Shown here: positions 8,847 to 63,770 of the stretch, piece after piece
Layout: every line of letters starts with the position of its first letter
Numbering within the stretch: the first letter of the stretch is position 1
Sequence record: OQ363659.1
Reading direction: 5' to 3' (one strand)
Length of the DNA: 64,000 nucleotides
Notes under the pieces: model-generated
The model's input: only the letters and a program-made list of their open reading frames with translations
Databases searched by the model: none
What the model was told of the DNA's origin: nothing
Position numbers and translations under genes: made by a program

Positions 8847-9068
8847 TTAGCACCAGTAGGCTAAGGTCAAGGCTTTGACAATCGCAGCTCCAATAGCCAA
8901 CAACAAAAAGCCACCCCCTGCAAGAAAGATCTTGGTATAGATCCGGCAGATAAGATGATAGCGAGGTTGGAACACATGGCTGATAAGTTCGTTACCGATA
9001 GCAAGCAATCCACCCACCACTAACAACAAGAAGCCAATGCACAGCAGAACGAATCCGATATAGAGCAT
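8847..9068 (-). CDS. Small two-TM membrane protein
   Basis: Two strongly hydrophobic segments. Confidence 0.75.
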   Translation of the reverse strand: MLYIGFVLLCIGFLLLVVGGLLAIGNELISHVFQPRYHLICRIYTKIFLAGGGFLLLAIGAAIVKALTLAYWC

Positions 9069-9462: not shown

Positions 9463-9487
9463 CATAAGGCCTTCCCGAAGGAAGGCC
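9463..9487 (-). terminator. Hairpin + TATG terminator-like element
   Basis: GGCCTTCC-TTCG-GGAAGGCC then TTATG, just after the stop of 9493-9867. Confidence 0.75.
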
Positions 9488-12605: not shown

Positions 12606-12729
12606 AAAATAAAAGCCTCCCTCCTTTGCTCTTAGTGGGTCTGTTCACCTATACTAAGGGGGAGCTGAGTATAAAAAAGAAAAAGGTGGTAGATGGACTC
12701 CCCTAACCCGAAGGCCAGAGGAGTCCATC
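12606..12729 (-). terminator. Two tandem hairpins, each followed by a T-rich tract
   Basis: 17-bp stem with G.U pairs and TTCG loop (12692-12729) then TTTTTCTTTTTT; second imperfect hairpin then TTTTATTTTG. Confidence 0.75.
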
Positions 12730-17089: not shown

Positions 17090-17115
17090 GTAATATAGAC
17101 TTCAAACTTTTTGTG
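17090..17115 (-). promoter_or_regulatory. phiKZ-type early promoter
   Basis: CAAAAAGTTTGAAGTCTATATTAC on minus strand; near-identical to 8815-8840. Confidence 0.8.
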
Positions 17116-17128
17116 ATCAAAAAAAGAA

Positions 17129-17158
17129 CATAGTGCCTCCCCGAAGGGAGGCCTTATG
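17129..17158 (-). terminator. UUCG hairpin with TATG on both sides
   Basis: GCCTCCC-TTCG-GGGAGGC then ACTATGTTCTTTTTTT. Confidence 0.85.
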
Positions 17159-20400: not shown

Positions 20401-20418
20401 GTGAGCCCGAAGGCTCAC
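20401..20418 (-). terminator. Intrinsic terminator after dcd
   Basis: GTGAGCC-TTCG-GGCTCAC then TCTTTATTTTCTTTTTTT. Confidence 0.85.
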
Positions 20419-25493: not shown

Positions 25494-25919
25494 TTAATAC
25501 AGGTGTTCTGAAAACAGTTCTGTCTCAGAGCCACCTTCTTCCAACAGTTCACGCCCCTGCTCACGGCAAAGGTTGTACGCATCAGTACGGTTCCAGAACA
25601 TGCCATATTGGTCAATGAAACCTTGTTCGCATTTACCGTAGGCTTTCAAGGCATCATCGCCTATCAGCTCTAGGGTAAACCACATGGGTACGGAGAAATG
25701 CCGACTACCCGTAACAATGAAATCGCCATAGCGGTTAGCAGCACAAACAATTACACGCTTGACGTTGTAACGATCCCAACGCCAACCCTTGAAGTCTGGT
25801 TCATCTATCCAGCAGCGTTCGTGTAGCAGCTCATTAGCAACAGCAGCTGCCTGTGCAACGATGCGTACACGAATCCACAGAGGAATCCATCTAAGCCAAC
25901 GATTACGCTTTAGCCGCAC
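25494..25919 (-). CDS. Conserved phage hypothetical protein
   Basis: CAAN...GSRH...EQGFIDQYG.F.NR..A...LFSEHLY, a pattern I recall from widespread phage proteins of unknown function. Confidence 0.75.
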   Translation of the reverse strand: MRLKRNRWLRWIPLWIRVRIVAQAAAVANELLHERCWIDEPDFKGWRWDRYNVKRVIVCAANRYGDFIVTGSRHFSVPMWFTLELIGDDALKAYGKCEQGFIDQYGMFWNRTDAYNLCREQGRELLEEGGSETELFSEHLY

Positions 25920-26373
25920 AGAATGCCTCGTAGTCCGGGATCAAAGTAAACACGGTGTAGTTGTTACCTTCGAGACTGAGTTGTTTCTTCGGCATCATCA
26001 GGTGCCCTGCAACTTGGGCAGCGGTATGCAGTGCCAACATTTGATCCGCTGGAATAATACCGGCCAACGAAACGGTGATACCCATCAGAATGGCATTGCC
26101 TTCAGGATTAGGATCTTCAACAATCCCGAAACGACGTTGGCCTGAACCAGTGATCGTTTCCACAGCCTGCAACGAATGGAATGTATCTTCGTCGTTGAAA
26201 GCTTTATGCACATCCCGATAGGTCAACGCTGTTACCGATTGTAGCGGGAACATCTGGCGAGGCCATTCAGGGAATTCTTCACCTGGGGTAGGGTCAACCA
26301 AGAAGTCTACGTGTGGGGTGAGTTCATGGGTGACAATAACTTTCCCATTTTCTGGGCTCTGGTTGTGAGACAT
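25903..26373 (-). CDS. Hypothetical early protein (156 aa)
   Basis: GGAG RBS; first gene after the early promoter. Confidence 0.8.
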   Translation of the reverse strand: MSHNQSPENGKVIVTHELTPHVDFLVDPTPGEEFPEWPRQMFPLQSVTALTYRDVHKAFNDEDTFHSLQAVETITGSGQRRFGIVEDPNPEGNAILMGITVSLAGIIPADQMLALHTAAQVAGHLMMPKKQLSLEGNNYTVFTLIPDYEAFCAAKA

Positions 26374-26401
26374 TTAAAAACTCCAGTTGGAATGCAGAAT
26401 T

Positions 26402-26430
26402 GTAATATAGATTTGAGATTTTATTGAAAC
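26402..26430 (-). promoter_or_regulatory. phiKZ-type early promoter
   Basis: GTTTCAATAAAATCTCAAATCTATATTAC on minus strand. Confidence 0.8.
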
Positions 26431-26437
26431 GACATAA
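26402..26437. repeat. 36-bp terminator-tail/promoter repeat, copy 1
   Basis: 34/36 identical to 42300-42335. Confidence 0.85.
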
Positions 26438-26456
26438 TGGTTACCCGAAGGTAACC
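26433..26456 (-). terminator. UUCG hairpin + TATG with no protein gene directly upstream
   Basis: GGTTACC-TTCG-GGTAACC then ATTATG. Confidence 0.8.
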
Positions 26457-26620
26457 ACCAGAGGTCAGGCTCTAATAGACAAGGTACGTAGATGAGCATT
26501 CGTTGCTTCTCAGCAATAATGGTCACGCTCATGGGTGCAACTAGGCTGGATCACCTCCTCATGGACTGCGCATTAGCGCGGGCCTTGTCTATACTATCAT
26601 GCACAAAGTATTTAATTACA
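26433..26620 (-). ncRNA. Candidate structured small RNA carrying a 16-nt complement of the 16S rRNA 3' end
   Basis: 10-bp closing stem (26475-26484/26583-26592), three internal hairpins including a GAGA tetraloop, AGGAGGTGATCCAGCC at 26544-26559, own terminator. Confidence 0.55.
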
Positions 26621-26676
26621 TAAACCTGGTAGAGGGGCTAATCTTATGACTTCTAATAAAGAACAAGGGCTCAACC

Positions 26677-28800
26677 ATGCAAAGCTATTTCCGACGTTTG
26701 ATGGGCGTCGTAGTTGCTAAAGAACAAGGCAACGAAATCATCCTCTCCGGCGTAAACGGGAACCATCTCGTTCGGGACATTTCCAAGTATTGGAAAACAT
26801 CGCGTATTGCATCTAACATTTTCAACCACGCTAGTTCTACGGAACTCAGGTTCTATAAGTTCTTCGCCCCGGACTTCCTGTATATCCTGAACAGCGTAAT
26901 GAACTATCGTTCGCGTTTCATCTCGGTTCGTACTGCGGCTGCCATTCGTAGCGCGATGCTGGAATCGACTTGGGTAGGTAAAGCATTTGCTAAACCCGAT
27001 CCGCAAGCTGTTGGTCGTCTGGACTTCTCCAAGCTCAACAACCTGAAGTTCTCGGCTAAACCACCACAGCTCGAATACTTCCAGTCCTACAATACACGAC
27101 TGGACCAGTGGAACTTGGTGGGTGACCTGCTACACGCTGAGCCTGGTACTGGTAAGACGTACATGTGTACGGCTATCGGTGAAATGCTCAATGCCGATAA
27201 GATGGTATTCTTCTGTGAGAAGCGAGCTGTTGAAGTTGTATGGGAAGCATCGATGGATGAGATGTACCACCAGAAACAAACTGTGTGGTCCTCTGCAATG
27301 GGTCGTCCTTATAATGGTGAGCGGATTATCATCGTTCACTACCAATGGCTGTCGAACTTCCTCGACATGGTTCAGACCGGTATGTTTAAAGGCCAGAAGA
27401 TCTTCACTGCGCTTGATGAATGCCACAACATGAACGACCCTAAGTCTTTGCAGACTCAGCTCTACATCGCGTGCGTTAAGGCTCTGGGCTCACAAGACAA
27501 CATCCTGGCTTCTGGTACTCCGGTTAAAGCGCTGGGTGCTGAACTGATCACGTTGATGACCGTATCTGATCCACTGTTCACTCCGGAAGTAGAAGCACGC
27601 TTTCGGTTGATCTACGGTAAGGAAGGCGGTAAGGGTCTGGACATTATCCGACACCGAATGGGTTTCATGTCGTTCTTCATCGCGAAGACTGAAAAGGACA
27701 CAGGCCTCAAGCCACCGATTAACAAGCCGTACAAGATCCAGATCCCGAATGGTAATGACTTCACGCTCCCTGCTATTAAGGTAGTGATGGAAGCCTTCAT
27801 TAAGGAACGAGTTAAGTTCTATAAGGAACGGAAGCCACGAGATGAGAAGTATTGGGCCGAATGCTTACGGTTACACGAAGCTACCCTTCGCACGAAAGAG
27901 CAGATGGCAGCTTATAATGAGTACCGTCGTGTTCTGAAGATCGTTATCGCTAACCCTGACCCACGCTTTACTGGCGAAGAGATCAAGGCTACCAACAAGT
28001 ACGAGAAGATGGTGTTCGGGCCTTCGCTGCCACAGTCGATGATTCACGAGTTCCGTGATGTCAAGTCTGCTATCAAGTACGTGATGCTGAAGATCCAAGG
28101 TGAAACTCTCGGACGTATCCTCGGTGGTAAGCGGATTGAATGTCACGTTGCTATGGTTCCGCACGTTGACTGGGTTGGTATCGTTGAATCCACACAGAAG
28201 AAAACGATCATGTTTACTTCGTTCGTGGAAGCACTGGAAGCATCAGATGCACACACCCGTAAACTTGGTATGACTCCGATTGCGGTGTACGGCAAGACCT
28301 CTAACGAACTGGCTTCGATTGTAGGACGCTTTGATAAAGATCCTAAGCTGAACCCTTTACTTGCTACATACGCGTCGCTAGCGACAGCTGTGCGGTTAAC
28401 CATGGCTGACACCATGTTAATCCTGAACTCTCCATTCCGTAGCTATATCCTCGAACAGGCTATTGCACGTATCTGGCGTATTGGTCAAGATTCACAGTGT
28501 GTGGTTTACACAGCCGTACTCGATACTGGTGACGTACCAAACATCTCTACTCGATCAGCTGATATCTTGGCTTGGTCTCAAGCGATGGTTGAAGAGATCA
28601 CAGGTGTTAAGTCTCCGTTTGAACAGAAGGAAGCATTCGAGTCTTACATCGCTAGTGCTCCGCAAGAGTTCGACGACAACAAAATGTTCTACGCGGTACT
28701 GAAGAAATCTCTGGAAGCCTACGACCTAGACGTGGAACGGAAAGAATTCGAAGTTCCTAAAGCTACGGCTAACCGCGTTCCTGGATGGATGAGATCTTAA
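26677..28800 (+). CDS. SNF2-like superfamily 2 helicase
   Basis: Motif I LLHAEPGTGKT, motif II LDECH, motif III ASGTP, motif VI QAIARIWRIGQ. Confidence 0.88.
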   Translation: MQSYFRRLMGVVVAKEQGNEIILSGVNGNHLVRDISKYWKTSRIASNIFNHASSTELRFYKFFAPDFLYILNSVMNYRSRFISVRTAAAIRSAMLESTWVGKAFAKPDPQAVGRLDFSKLNNLKFSAKPPQLEYFQSYNTRLDQWNLVGDLLHAEPGTGKTYMCTAIGEMLNADKMVFFCEKRAVEVVWEASMDEMYHQKQTVWSSAMGRPYNGERIIIVHYQWLSNFLDMVQTGMFKGQKIFTALDECHNMNDPKSLQTQLYIACVKALGSQDNILASGTPVKALGAELITLMTVSDPLFTPEVEARFRLIYGKEGGKGLDIIRHRMGFMSFFIAKTEKDTGLKPPINKPYKIQIPNGNDFTLPAIKVVMEAFIKERVKFYKERKPRDEKYWAECLRLHEATLRTKEQMAAYNEYRRVLKIVIANPDPRFTGEEIKATNKYEKMVFGPSLPQSMIHEFRDVKSAIKYVMLKIQGETLGRILGGKRIECHVAMVPHVDWVGIVESTQKKTIMFTSFVEALEASDAHTRKLGMTPIAVYGKTSNELASIVGRFDKDPKLNPLLATYASLATAVRLTMADTMLILNSPFRSYILEQAIARIWRIGQDSQCVVYTAVLDTGDVPNISTRSADILAWSQAMVEEITGVKSPFEQKEAFESYIASAPQEFDDNKMFYAVLKKSLEAYDLDVERKEFEVPKATANRVPGWMRS

Positions 28801-34229: not shown

Positions 34230-34247
34230 GCCTCCCCGAAGGGAGGC
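34230..34247 (-). terminator. Intrinsic terminator
   Basis: GCCTCCC-TTCG-GGGAGGC then TTTATTTTG. Confidence 0.85.
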
Positions 34248-37131: not shown

Positions 37132-37152
37132 AGTAGCCCCGAAGGGGCTACT
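37132..37152 (-). terminator. Intrinsic terminator
   Basis: AGTAGCCCC-TTC-GGGGCTACT then TTATTT. Confidence 0.8.
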
Positions 37153-38524: not shown

Positions 38525-38551
38525 AGCATTGGGTCCCGAAGGACCCATGCT
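38525..38551 (-). terminator. Intrinsic terminator
   Basis: AGCATGGGTCC-TTCG-GGACCCAATGCT then CAATTCTTTTTT. Confidence 0.8.
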
Positions 38552-42299: not shown

Positions 42300-42330
42300 G
42301 TAATATAGATCTGAGATTTTATTGAAACAA
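42300..42330 (-). promoter_or_regulatory. phiKZ-type early promoter
   Basis: GTTTCAATAAAATCTCAGATCTATATTAC on minus strand. Confidence 0.8.
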
Positions 42331-42335
42331 CATAA
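42300..42335. repeat. 36-bp terminator-tail/promoter repeat, copy 2
   Basis: 34/36 identical to 26402-26437. Confidence 0.85.
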
Positions 42336-42355
42336 GAGTTCCCCGAAGGGAACTC
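42331..42355 (-). terminator. UUCG hairpin + TATG
   Basis: GAGTTCCC-TTCG-GGGAACTC then TTATG. Confidence 0.85.
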
Positions 42356-42652: not shown

Positions 42653-42678
42653 CATAAAGGCTATCCCGAAGGATAGCC
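42653..42678 (-). terminator. UUCG hairpin + TATG
   Basis: GGCTATCC-TTCG-GGATAGCC then TTTATG. Confidence 0.85.
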
Positions 42679-45188: not shown

Positions 45189-45206
45189 GCCTACCCGAAG
45201 GTAGGC
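45189..45206 (-). terminator. Terminator after the gp181-like gene
   Basis: GCCTACC-TTCG-GGTAGGC then TTTATTTTG. Confidence 0.85.
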
Positions 45207-61827: not shown

Positions 61828-61853
61828 GGCTCTCCCGAAGGAGAGCCATTATG
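61828..61853. terminator. Bidirectional terminator
   Basis: GGCTCTCC-CGAA-GGAGAGCC; plus side ATTATG, minus side T-tract. Confidence 0.85.
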
Positions 61854-62156: not shown

Positions 62157-62180
62157 GTAATATAGGCTTGTAGGAAAGTC
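62157..62180 (-). promoter_or_regulatory. phiKZ-type early promoter
   Basis: CTATATTAC at 62157-62165 on minus strand, immediately after a terminator. Confidence 0.7.
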
Positions 62181-62188
62181 TAATACGG

Positions 62189-62210
62189 CATAAAGCCTCC
62201 CGAAGGAGGC
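62189..62210 (-). terminator. UUCG hairpin + TATG
   Basis: GCCTCC-TTCG-GGAGGC then TTTATGCC. Confidence 0.85.
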
Positions 62211-63745: not shown

Positions 63746-63770
63746 CATAGCAGCCTCCCCGAAGGGAGGC
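63746..63770 (-). terminator. UUCG hairpin + TATG
   Basis: GCCTCCC-TTCG-GGGAGGC then TGCTATGCC. Confidence 0.8.

Follow-up and report, generated by a model that had tools for sequence, protein, structure and literature searches.

The locus examined here raises the question of why a bacteriophage genome should hold, between two genes, a perfect complement of the 3' end region of bacterial 16S ribosomal RNA (rRNA). The DNA concerned is a stretch of 64,000 nucleotides (nt) of sequence record OQ363659.1, referred to below as the window, in which each position equals the record position minus 62,000; its source is Pseudomonas phage D6, a 307-kb jumbo phage infecting P. syringae. A first-pass annotation, made from the letters of the window, had proposed a phage small RNA (sRNA) that binds or shields the 3' ends of host 30S ribosomal subunits. 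The present analysis indicates that the element is very probably a real sRNA gene of about 160 nt on the minus strand (26430-26589, corresponding to D6 88,430-88,589 in record coordinates); the gene, its strand and its fold are well supported, and its complementarity to 16S rRNA suggests what the target might be.

The complementary 16-mer, GGCTGGATCACCTCCT, occupies positions 26544-26559 of the plus strand and is present as a single copy in the window, even when two mismatches are allowed, against 0.01 matches expected by shuffling (one of 100 shuffled sequences contained any match). In Pseudomonas sp. B22129, whose 16S 3' end served as reference (locus L219, where the match to the Rfam small-subunit (SSU) rRNA model ends at 411), the same letters are found at L219:394-409 and are followed by TA, i.e., they stop 2 nt short of the 16S 3' end and represent positions -18 to -3 of Pseudomonas 16S rRNA. 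It follows from this placement that the D6 plus strand is sense and the minus strand antisense to 16S rRNA. The 16-nt complement recognized by the first-pass annotation is therefore real, and so is its assignment to the GGCUG form of the tail, which is the Pseudomonas type. Moreover, the complementarity could be extended to 18 nt (26544-26561) by counting a G.U pair to the penultimate U and a U opposite the terminal A, so that the run reaches the final base of 16S rRNA. As had also been stated, the motif lies in a gene-free gap: the interval 26374-26676 (303 bp) is unannotated and is flanked by a coding sequence (CDS) at 25903-26373 on the minus strand and by a gene at 26677-28800 on the plus strand for an SNF2-type helicase, a homologue of phiKZ gp203.

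Conservation, fold and strand of the element

The same element was found in 19 distinct phage genomes or contigs, natural sequence variants included, namely in D6-like phages, Psa21, RVTF4, 201phi2-1, Viktualia, phiKZ, PhiPA3, PA1C, Phabio and Noxifer as well as in metagenomic relatives. The copies in 201phi2-1, Viktualia and eight viral or metagenomic contigs (genomes of 305-317 kb) were detected by a sensitive DNA search and by pattern scans, while those of phiKZ, PhiPA3, PA1C, Phabio and Noxifer were found by inspecting the surroundings of the helicase gene. All homologues lie near a helicase gene of the gp203 type, the 201phi2-1 copy (EU197055, 229,020-229,202 on the plus strand) being 1.5 kb away from it; the phiKZ copy occupies positions 212,854-213,040 of NC_004629 and the PhiPA3 copy positions 216,217-216,392 of NC_028999, both likewise on the plus strand. 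In Psa21 and RVTF4, conservation of the gap exceeds that of the flanking genes. Scanning IMG/VR with the 15-mer alone gave at least 118 matches, which is about the chance number, and these fell within coding sequence or at ordinary ribosome-binding sites (RBSs), so that the scan carried no information; two-block patterns were required, and the additional matches that these produced lay for the most part within genes and were due to chance. No IMG/VR sequence contained the 18-mer exactly antisense to the end of Pseudomonas 16S rRNA.

A common plan is shared by the homologues and comprises, from 5' to 3', the 5' strand of stem P1, hairpin P2, a long joiner containing the block antisense to 16S rRNA (block 1), the P3 domain, a short joiner, the return strand of P1, a variable hairpin and a terminator; the arrangement of P1, P2 and P3 is a three-way junction. 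In D6, the P1 5' strand GACAAGG (26583-26589) pairs with CCUUGUC (26478-26484), P2 is the hairpin GCGC-UAAU-GCGC (26568-26579), and the P3 domain (26492-26532) consists of a lower stem, an internal loop and the apical stem UUGCU/AGCAA, which is closed by the GNRA loop GAGA (26508-26511). As P1 and P3 are out of register in MAFFT alignments of the full set, the pairs of P1 were counted in the 19 homologues with a script anchored on the invariant GG/CC pairs. At the sixth pair of P1, A-U was found 12 times, G-C twice, and C-G and U-A once each, and at the seventh pair 12 members have G-C and one each C-G, A-U and U-A; four genomes keep the stem with a one-base bulge or a mismatch. Compensatory changes were also seen in P2 (C-G in ten and U-A in six members at one pair, G-C in 15 and A-U in one at another) and in the apical stem of P3, which covaries at two pairs (A-U 5, G-C 4, U-A 3 and U.G 1; U-A 7, C-G 3 and A-U 2). 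The apical loop of P3 is GAGA, GGGA, GCGA or GUGA in most relatives, and phiKZ and Phabio have five-base loops. Runs of MAFFT and RNAalifold returned changes in both partners of a pair for P2, for the P3 apical stem and for the terminator, the stem of the latter being fully compensatory across relatives, and the fold of the D6 minus strand was better than that of shuffled sequences (z -2.6). That the element is a conserved structured RNA whose helices are backed by compensatory changes is, as far as comparison of sequences can tell, well supported, and the conservation in relatives on which the first-pass annotation had made its proposal depend is evident from the 19 homologues and their compensatory stems. 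From the fold which that annotation had drawn for D6, the closing stem, with GACAAGG/CCUUGUC as its inner part, was retained, and so were the GCGC-UAAU-GCGC hairpin, the stem that carries the GAGA loop (26503-26516) and the hairpin with the UUCG loop; the weak hairpin of GGUG/CACC and CAGC/GUUG was dropped, since it is predicted in D6 alone and is not conserved.

The minus strand had been favored as the RNA strand from the outset, and this is corroborated by the G.U pairs of P1, by the loops and by the class to which the terminator belongs. The fourth pair of P1 is A-U in 13 and G.U in 6 of the 19 homologues, and on the plus strand each of these G.U pairs would turn into a C-A mismatch; the same holds for P3 of RVTF4, which also contains a G.U pair. 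Both the GNRA and the UUCG loops read as such on the minus strand only. The terminator hairpin GGUUACC-UUCG-GGUAACC (26439-26456), which is followed by AUUAUG, is one of 16 hairpins with the UUCG-loop core CCTTCGGG in the window, all of which are on the minus strand and at the ends of minus-strand genes (1.2 expected). The cores are located at 796-803, 2876-2883, 9474-9481, 12707-12714, 17140-17147, 20406-20413, 26444-26451, 34235-34242, 37138-37145, 38535-38542, 42342-42349, 42665-42672, 45194-45201, 61834-61841, 62199-62206 and 63758-63765; none was found on the plus strand despite approximately 15 kb of plus-strand genes in the window. Membership in this class marks the hairpin at 26439-26456 as the ordinary terminator of the phage, and on the D6 minus strand there is nothing but the RNA for it to terminate. 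As a side observation, several of the CCTTCGGG hairpins have TTATG or CTATG a few bases further on, and a late-type TATG start may thus adjoin the terminator.

The probable start of the RNA is given by a promoter-like box (26590-26610 on the minus strand), which abuts the first base of P1 in all 19 homologues and is a fourth cue to the minus strand. In D6 the box is TACTTTGTGCATGATAGTATA, followed by the G at 26589, so that TATAG occupies 26589-26593; all genomes share this TATAG end except Noxifer, which has TATG. In phiKZ, late promoters carry TATG with the G as +1 (PMC4666361), and by this precedent the G at 26589 is taken as the likely 5' end. The TATG at 26619-26622, which had been pointed out as a late-promoter core, is rejected as the start because it is not conserved in the relatives, and the length of about 185 nt that had been estimated for the RNA is consequently shortened to about 160 nt, from 26589, as set by the conserved TATAG box and the start of P1, to about 26430. 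The predicted 3' end lies just past the terminator hairpin and is uncertain by approximately 10 nt.

Evidence that the RNA does not code for protein came from the comparison of open reading frames (ORFs): those of at least 20 amino acids vary in frame and position between the homologues, and phiKZ has none on either strand. Rfam 15 had nothing relevant in the window region at E values up to 10, and no hit at the gathering score was obtained in six homologous loci. Three coding readings for D6, i.e., a 52-amino-acid ORF on the minus strand (26374-26532), a 43-amino-acid ORF on the plus strand (26492-26623) and a mini-ORF AUG-AGG-AGG-UGA, were rejected as no frame is conserved among homologues, and for the same reason the small ORFs lying over the RNA are probably not genes. 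Likewise, the block antisense to 16S rRNA does not qualify as the RBS of an ORF: the nearest AUG in D6 is 21 nt away and is not conserved. The 52-amino-acid ORF runs right up to the start codon of the gene that follows, and in Viktualia an annotated CDS of 29 amino acids (L125:2462-2551) overlaps the element.

Pairing potential with the 16S rRNA tail

The central part of the element is block 1, UGAGGAGGUGAUCCAGCC (26544-26561 on the minus strand), which includes the 16-mer and is antisense to the last 18 nt of 16S rRNA with one G.U pair. Every homologue contains an unbroken run of 14-21 nt, G.U pairs included, that pairs with the Pseudomonas 16S tail, and without exception this run stops at one of the three final 16S bases (-1, -2 or -3). 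The D6 group has a run of 18 nt and the Psa21 group one of 19-20 nt, and lengths of 17, 14 and 16 nt were obtained for the 201phi2-1 group, Phabio and Noxifer, respectively; in phiKZ (21 nt), PhiPA3 (18 nt) and PA1C (19 nt) the terminal CCUUA of 16S rRNA is covered as well. An alignment of the RNA from 18 genomes has 22 invariant columns, 12 of which fall in block 1, and the antisense stretch is thereby the most conserved part of the element. The substitutions observed inside the run are restricted to A/G opposite U and C/U opposite G, so that pairing is kept via wobble, with the qualification that independent events are few, that transitions are common anyway and that one of the changes also fits an internal hairpin of 3 bp. 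Where A has changed to G in the run, a GGA triplet is lost and the pairing with 16S rRNA is kept.

For D6, the duplex between block 1 and the 16S tail is predicted at -37 kcal/mol, with an opening cost of about 8; across the homologues, predicted values for the duplex with the last 21 nt of 16S rRNA range from -31 to -38 kcal/mol and those for opening from 4 to 11 kcal/mol. An ordinary RBS is several-fold weaker than such a duplex. No conserved covarying partner of block 1 was seen within the RNA. Two local pairings which might mask it were noted. The stretch GAGGAGGU (26552-26559) can pair with the segment ACCUUGUC of the P1 return strand (26478-26485), in mutual exclusion with P1, and the anti-Shine-Dalgarno-like heptamer GACCUCU (26460-26466), which lies between P1 and the terminator and is kept in the D6/Psa21 clade and in phiKZ and not in the 201phi2-1 clade, could mask GGAGGU. 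These pairings are hints that the RNA could adopt two states, one with block 1 covered, between which covariation does not decide.

Resemblance to 16S rRNA is limited to block 1 and a short block 2, both of which are antisense. Block 2, CUACG-UA-CCUUGU (26479-26491 on the minus strand), spans the junction J3/1 and the 3' strand of P1 and is collinear with the antisense of 16S ACAAGG-UAGC-CGUAG, which is the junction before helix 45. Compared with shuffled sequences, it was significant in D6 (p 0.02), phiKZ (0.035) and PA1C (0.004), where it is extended by ACGACU; PhiPA3 was borderline (0.07), and significance was not reached in Psa21, 201phi2-1, Phabio and Noxifer. As a second site matching 16S rRNA, block 2 is hence suggestive only. 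The two blocks together may amount to an antisense copy, with an interruption, of roughly the final 45 nt of 16S rRNA, from which the RNA may descend or as which it may still act; we take this as a lead only.

Proposed action on the 30S subunit and its alternatives

Following this, we propose that the RNA of about 160 nt would be transcribed from the minus strand, starting at the TATAG box and ending at the UUCG terminator, and that the strand joining P2 and P3 would present its 14-21 antisense nt to the 16S 3' end, i.e., to the anti-Shine-Dalgarno tail together with the bases that immediately precede it. This joining strand would be an oversized Shine-Dalgarno mimic that pairs directly with the tail on host 30S subunits and, with the docking site for messenger RNA (mRNA) occupied, would change which or how many messages initiate translation during infection. 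We give this reading, in which the sRNA pairs with the anti-Shine-Dalgarno tail of the 30S subunit and thereby alters initiation, about an even chance, and the balance tips somewhat further in favor of 16S rRNA being the partner in some form. The published Grad-seq screen of phiKZ sought phage RNAs that do not co-migrate with ribosomes, and an RNA bound to 30S subunits would therefore have escaped it. If the proposal is true, this would be the first known case of an RNA encoded by a phage that acts on the ribosome via base pairing with rRNA; the phage factors known to us that touch the ribosome are proteins. It would also bear on the question of how nucleus-forming jumbo phages bias translation in the cytoplasm once the phage genome has been sealed off. 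The element is present in the laboratory models phiKZ, PhiPA3 and 201phi2-1, for which public transcriptome and gradient data exist, and for annotation it provides a new, clearly recognizable RNA family to place in a gap so far left blank or given doubtful small ORFs.

Several observations weigh against action on the 30S tail as proposed. Only about the last dozen bases of 16S rRNA are free in the mature 30S subunit, so that a full duplex of 18-21 bp would need helix 45 to be opened, and competition from a tightly binding Shine-Dalgarno mimic should also affect the messages of the phage itself. The predicted unpaired probability of the block is 0.31-0.58 and thus close to the average of the molecule. 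Apart from the possible pairing of GAGGAGGU with the P1 3' strand, a GGA/UCC mini-hairpin of three pairs is an alternative local structure, and it would likewise tolerate the A/G change. All known hosts are Pseudomonas and have the same 16S tail, so that tracking of the host sequence by the motif would hardly show. The TATAG box is late-promoter-like but differs from the published TATG and is unique in the window. Finally, no such gap motif was found within 10 kb on either side of the helicase gene in Erwinia phage Ea35-70, Ralstonia phage RP12, E. coli phage Goslar and the EL-like Pseudomonas phage HHBS8_1.

Alternatively, the RNA might act on 16S rRNA before or outside the mature ribosome, pairing with nascent or immature 16S rRNA or opening helix 45 by means of both blocks, and would then disturb maturation of the 30S subunit or mark the rRNA for cleavage instead of only occupying the tail. 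The collinearity of block 2 with 16S antisense in D6, phiKZ and PA1C, where it exceeds shuffled sequences, speaks for this, as does the fact that in phiKZ, PA1C and the Psa21 clade the run of block 1 continues to positions -19 to -21 and thus into helix 45 on its 3' side. We nevertheless hold it to be unlikely, given that block 2 lacks significance in the four genomes named above, that its CCUUG is used in P1, which alone accounts for its conservation, and that the spacing of the two blocks deviates from that in 16S rRNA by 1-2 nt. A bolder version, to which we assign a low probability, is that phiKZ-like phages make an anti-ribosomal RNA whose block 1 would seize the tail and whose block 2, freed from P1, would invade the helix 44/45 junction, with the result that host subunits or their precursors would be remodelled, disabled or re-programmed; to our knowledge, no such takeover by pairing with rRNA has been described for any virus of bacteria. 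A different possibility is that the element acts in cis, as a 5' untranslated region (UTR) with a conditional terminator ahead of the downstream gene and with its Shine-Dalgarno-like stretch serving as a standby site or a sensor of ribosome availability. A co-oriented gene follows the RNA in D6, Psa21, RVTF4, phiKZ, 201phi2-1 (where the RNA lies between two co-oriented genes) and Phabio, the heptamer GACCUCU directly ahead of the terminator is a possible masking partner, and the transcriptomes of phiKZ and 201phi2-1 contain many short 5' UTR RNAs derived from premature termination (PMC10914365, PMC11512511). However, the downstream genes fall into groups unrelated in BLASTP: those of D6, Psa21 and RVTF4 are alike, as are those of 201phi2-1 and Viktualia, and BLASTP gave no matches between these groups or to the downstream genes of phiKZ, Phabio or Noxifer. 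Furthermore, no gene follows on the RNA strand in PA1C; in PhiPA3 the orientation of the RNA relative to the helicase gene is reversed, so that it points at that gene, which retains its own promoter box past the RNA terminator; and in D6 a separate promoter box stands between the terminator and the next gene. Since these layouts and the differing downstream genes argue against a leader dedicated to one gene, we consider a cis-acting role rather unlikely.

The Shine-Dalgarno-like single strand might also be aimed at proteins, as a bait for regulators of the RsmA/RsmE type, for ribosomal protein S1 or for a phage RNA-binding protein. Pseudomonas employs GGA-rich sponge RNAs, members of the D6 type display GGA within AGGAGG on an apparently open strand, and the P3 loop of phiKZ is CAGGA. 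This explanation appears quite unlikely to us, and its Rsm-type form was rejected: an RNA contains between zero and three GGA triplets, with none in 201phi2-1 or L145, and in 8 of the 19 members (201phi2-1, Viktualia, L145, phiKZ, PhiPA3, PA1C and L311, the phiKZ-type contig L309 not being distinct) the core is GGGGG, by which GGA is lost and wobble pairing with 16S rRNA is kept; in addition, the conservation of 14-21 collinear bases up to the end of 16S rRNA goes far beyond what a site for such a protein would need. Were the plus strand active instead, its transcript would imitate the 16S tail and could decoy factors or nucleases that act on it. The plus strand of D6 is indeed sense to 16S rRNA over a perfect 16 nt, and its fold scores z -3.5. 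The G.U pairs of P1 and P3 turn into C-A mismatches on that strand, however, its loops are no longer UUCG and GNRA, the terminator class is confined to the minus strand, and the only plus-strand promoter box in D6 is downstream of the element. Moreover, the T to C and G to A changes between homologues spoil the imitation of the tail yet keep antisense pairing, and activity of the plus strand is thus highly improbable. There is, lastly, hardly any room for the view that the match arose by chance, through primers or in assembly, or that the element is a functionless remnant of captured ribosomal DNA (rDNA) in decay. The first-pass annotation had remarked that the 16-mer matches the core of a common 16S reverse primer; natural variants of the element are present in 19 genomes and contigs that were assembled independently, which excludes an artefact of primers, chimeras or assembly, the core is the most conserved part of the gap, the helices of the element covary, and Rfam finds no SSU rRNA match in the window region.

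Neighboring features and relation to known systems

Downstream of the RNA, at 26402-26411 on the minus strand, lies the box TCTATATTAC, which is upstream of the gene at 25903-26373 and is part of that gene rather than of the RNA. The window contains nine matches to TCTATATTAC, all on the minus strand (2.6 expected), and the box recurs before other minus-strand genes; it is similar to the middle-promoter element AAanTTACc of phiKZ (PMC4666361). The succession of a terminator and, approximately 40 nt on, TCTATATTAC or a version of it with one mismatch occurs four times (17090-17147, 26402-26451, 42300-42349 and 62157-62206). There is hardly any difference between the module at 42300-42349 and that following the RNA, and PA1C-like phages have the same module of terminator and box after the major head gene (L126:1501-1557). 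On the other side of the RNA, the segment GGCTAATCTTATGACTTCT (26630-26648 on the plus strand) shows no variation among D6, Psa21 and RVTF4 and very little in phiKZ and PhiPA3, its counterparts (L288 about 8950-8968 and L289 about 8955-8975) being situated ahead of the helicase gene and carrying the late TATG of the phiKZ type. The TATG within GGCTAATCTTATGACTTCT (26645-26648) stands 29 nt before the helicase ATG and is taken as the helicase's own late-type promoter.

Two observations concern genes in the vicinity of the RNA in other phages. In PA1C (L291:9001-12155) and PhiPA3 (L289:8989-12159) the helicase homologue measures approximately 3.15 kb as compared to 2.1 kb and matches in two pieces, which indicates an insertion of about 1 kb within the gene (an intron, an intein or an extra domain); the long version is also present in SL2, PS119XW, BRkr and others, and PA1C is annotated with two overlapping CDSs. 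In Phabio, a gene annotated as RNA ligase (L290:4119-5546) lies approximately 2.5 kb from the RNA copy on the same strand.

The closest known systems include Shine-Dalgarno elements, among them unusually long ones, which like block 1 offer a purine-rich single strand for pairing with the CCUCC tail of 16S rRNA; in D6 a perfect AGGAGG is present. Unlike these elements, the phage RNA has neither a start codon at a usable distance nor a conserved ORF, its pairing extends over 14-21 nt instead of 4-9 nt, to the last 16S base and into helix 45, and its motif sits in the junction of a folded sRNA with a terminator of its own. With sponges of the CsrB/RsmY/RsmZ type it shares the display of Shine-Dalgarno-like GGA single strands by a structured sRNA. 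Those sponges, however, have many GGA loops and bind protein, whereas GGA is scarce in the phage RNA and its core tolerates the loss of it.

The transcriptomes of phiKZ and 201phi2-1 are described as containing 17 and 11 short RNA candidates, respectively, and the only family discussed in their text is sRNA005, upstream of gp277/gp182 (PMC10914365, PMC11512511). These short RNAs come from the same phages, belong to the same size class and show the same layout of promoter followed by terminator as the RNA described here, which lies at a locus other than that of sRNA005 and may be one of the unnamed candidates. In the main texts covered by our literature search, no report linking a phage RNA to the 16S 3' end was found, and complementarity to 16S rRNA is not mentioned. 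Interference with initiation by a small non-coding RNA at the small subunit is on record for Haloferax, where a processed piece of a cellular Val-tRNA is reported to bind at the decoding site (PMC11009984); in contrast, the phage RNA is a dedicated viral gene with a long antisense stretch to the rRNA 3' end. In concept, a parallel is 6S RNA, which is also a small, stable, folded RNA competing with a natural ligand, namely with promoter DNA for RNA polymerase, where the phage RNA would compete with mRNA for the 30S tail. The two differ in that the phage RNA is phage-encoded, resembles 6S RNA neither in sequence nor in structure and has no Rfam match, and in that 6S RNA is held by a protein, whereas the phage RNA would bind by Watson-Crick pairing with rRNA. 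Taken together, these comparisons suggest a base-pairing or decoy sRNA with an unprecedented target, which belongs to no Rfam family and is neither a sponge of the Csr/Rsm type nor an RBS. By analogy, it would work like a Shine-Dalgarno element removed from its message, in the manner of decoy RNAs such as 6S RNA.

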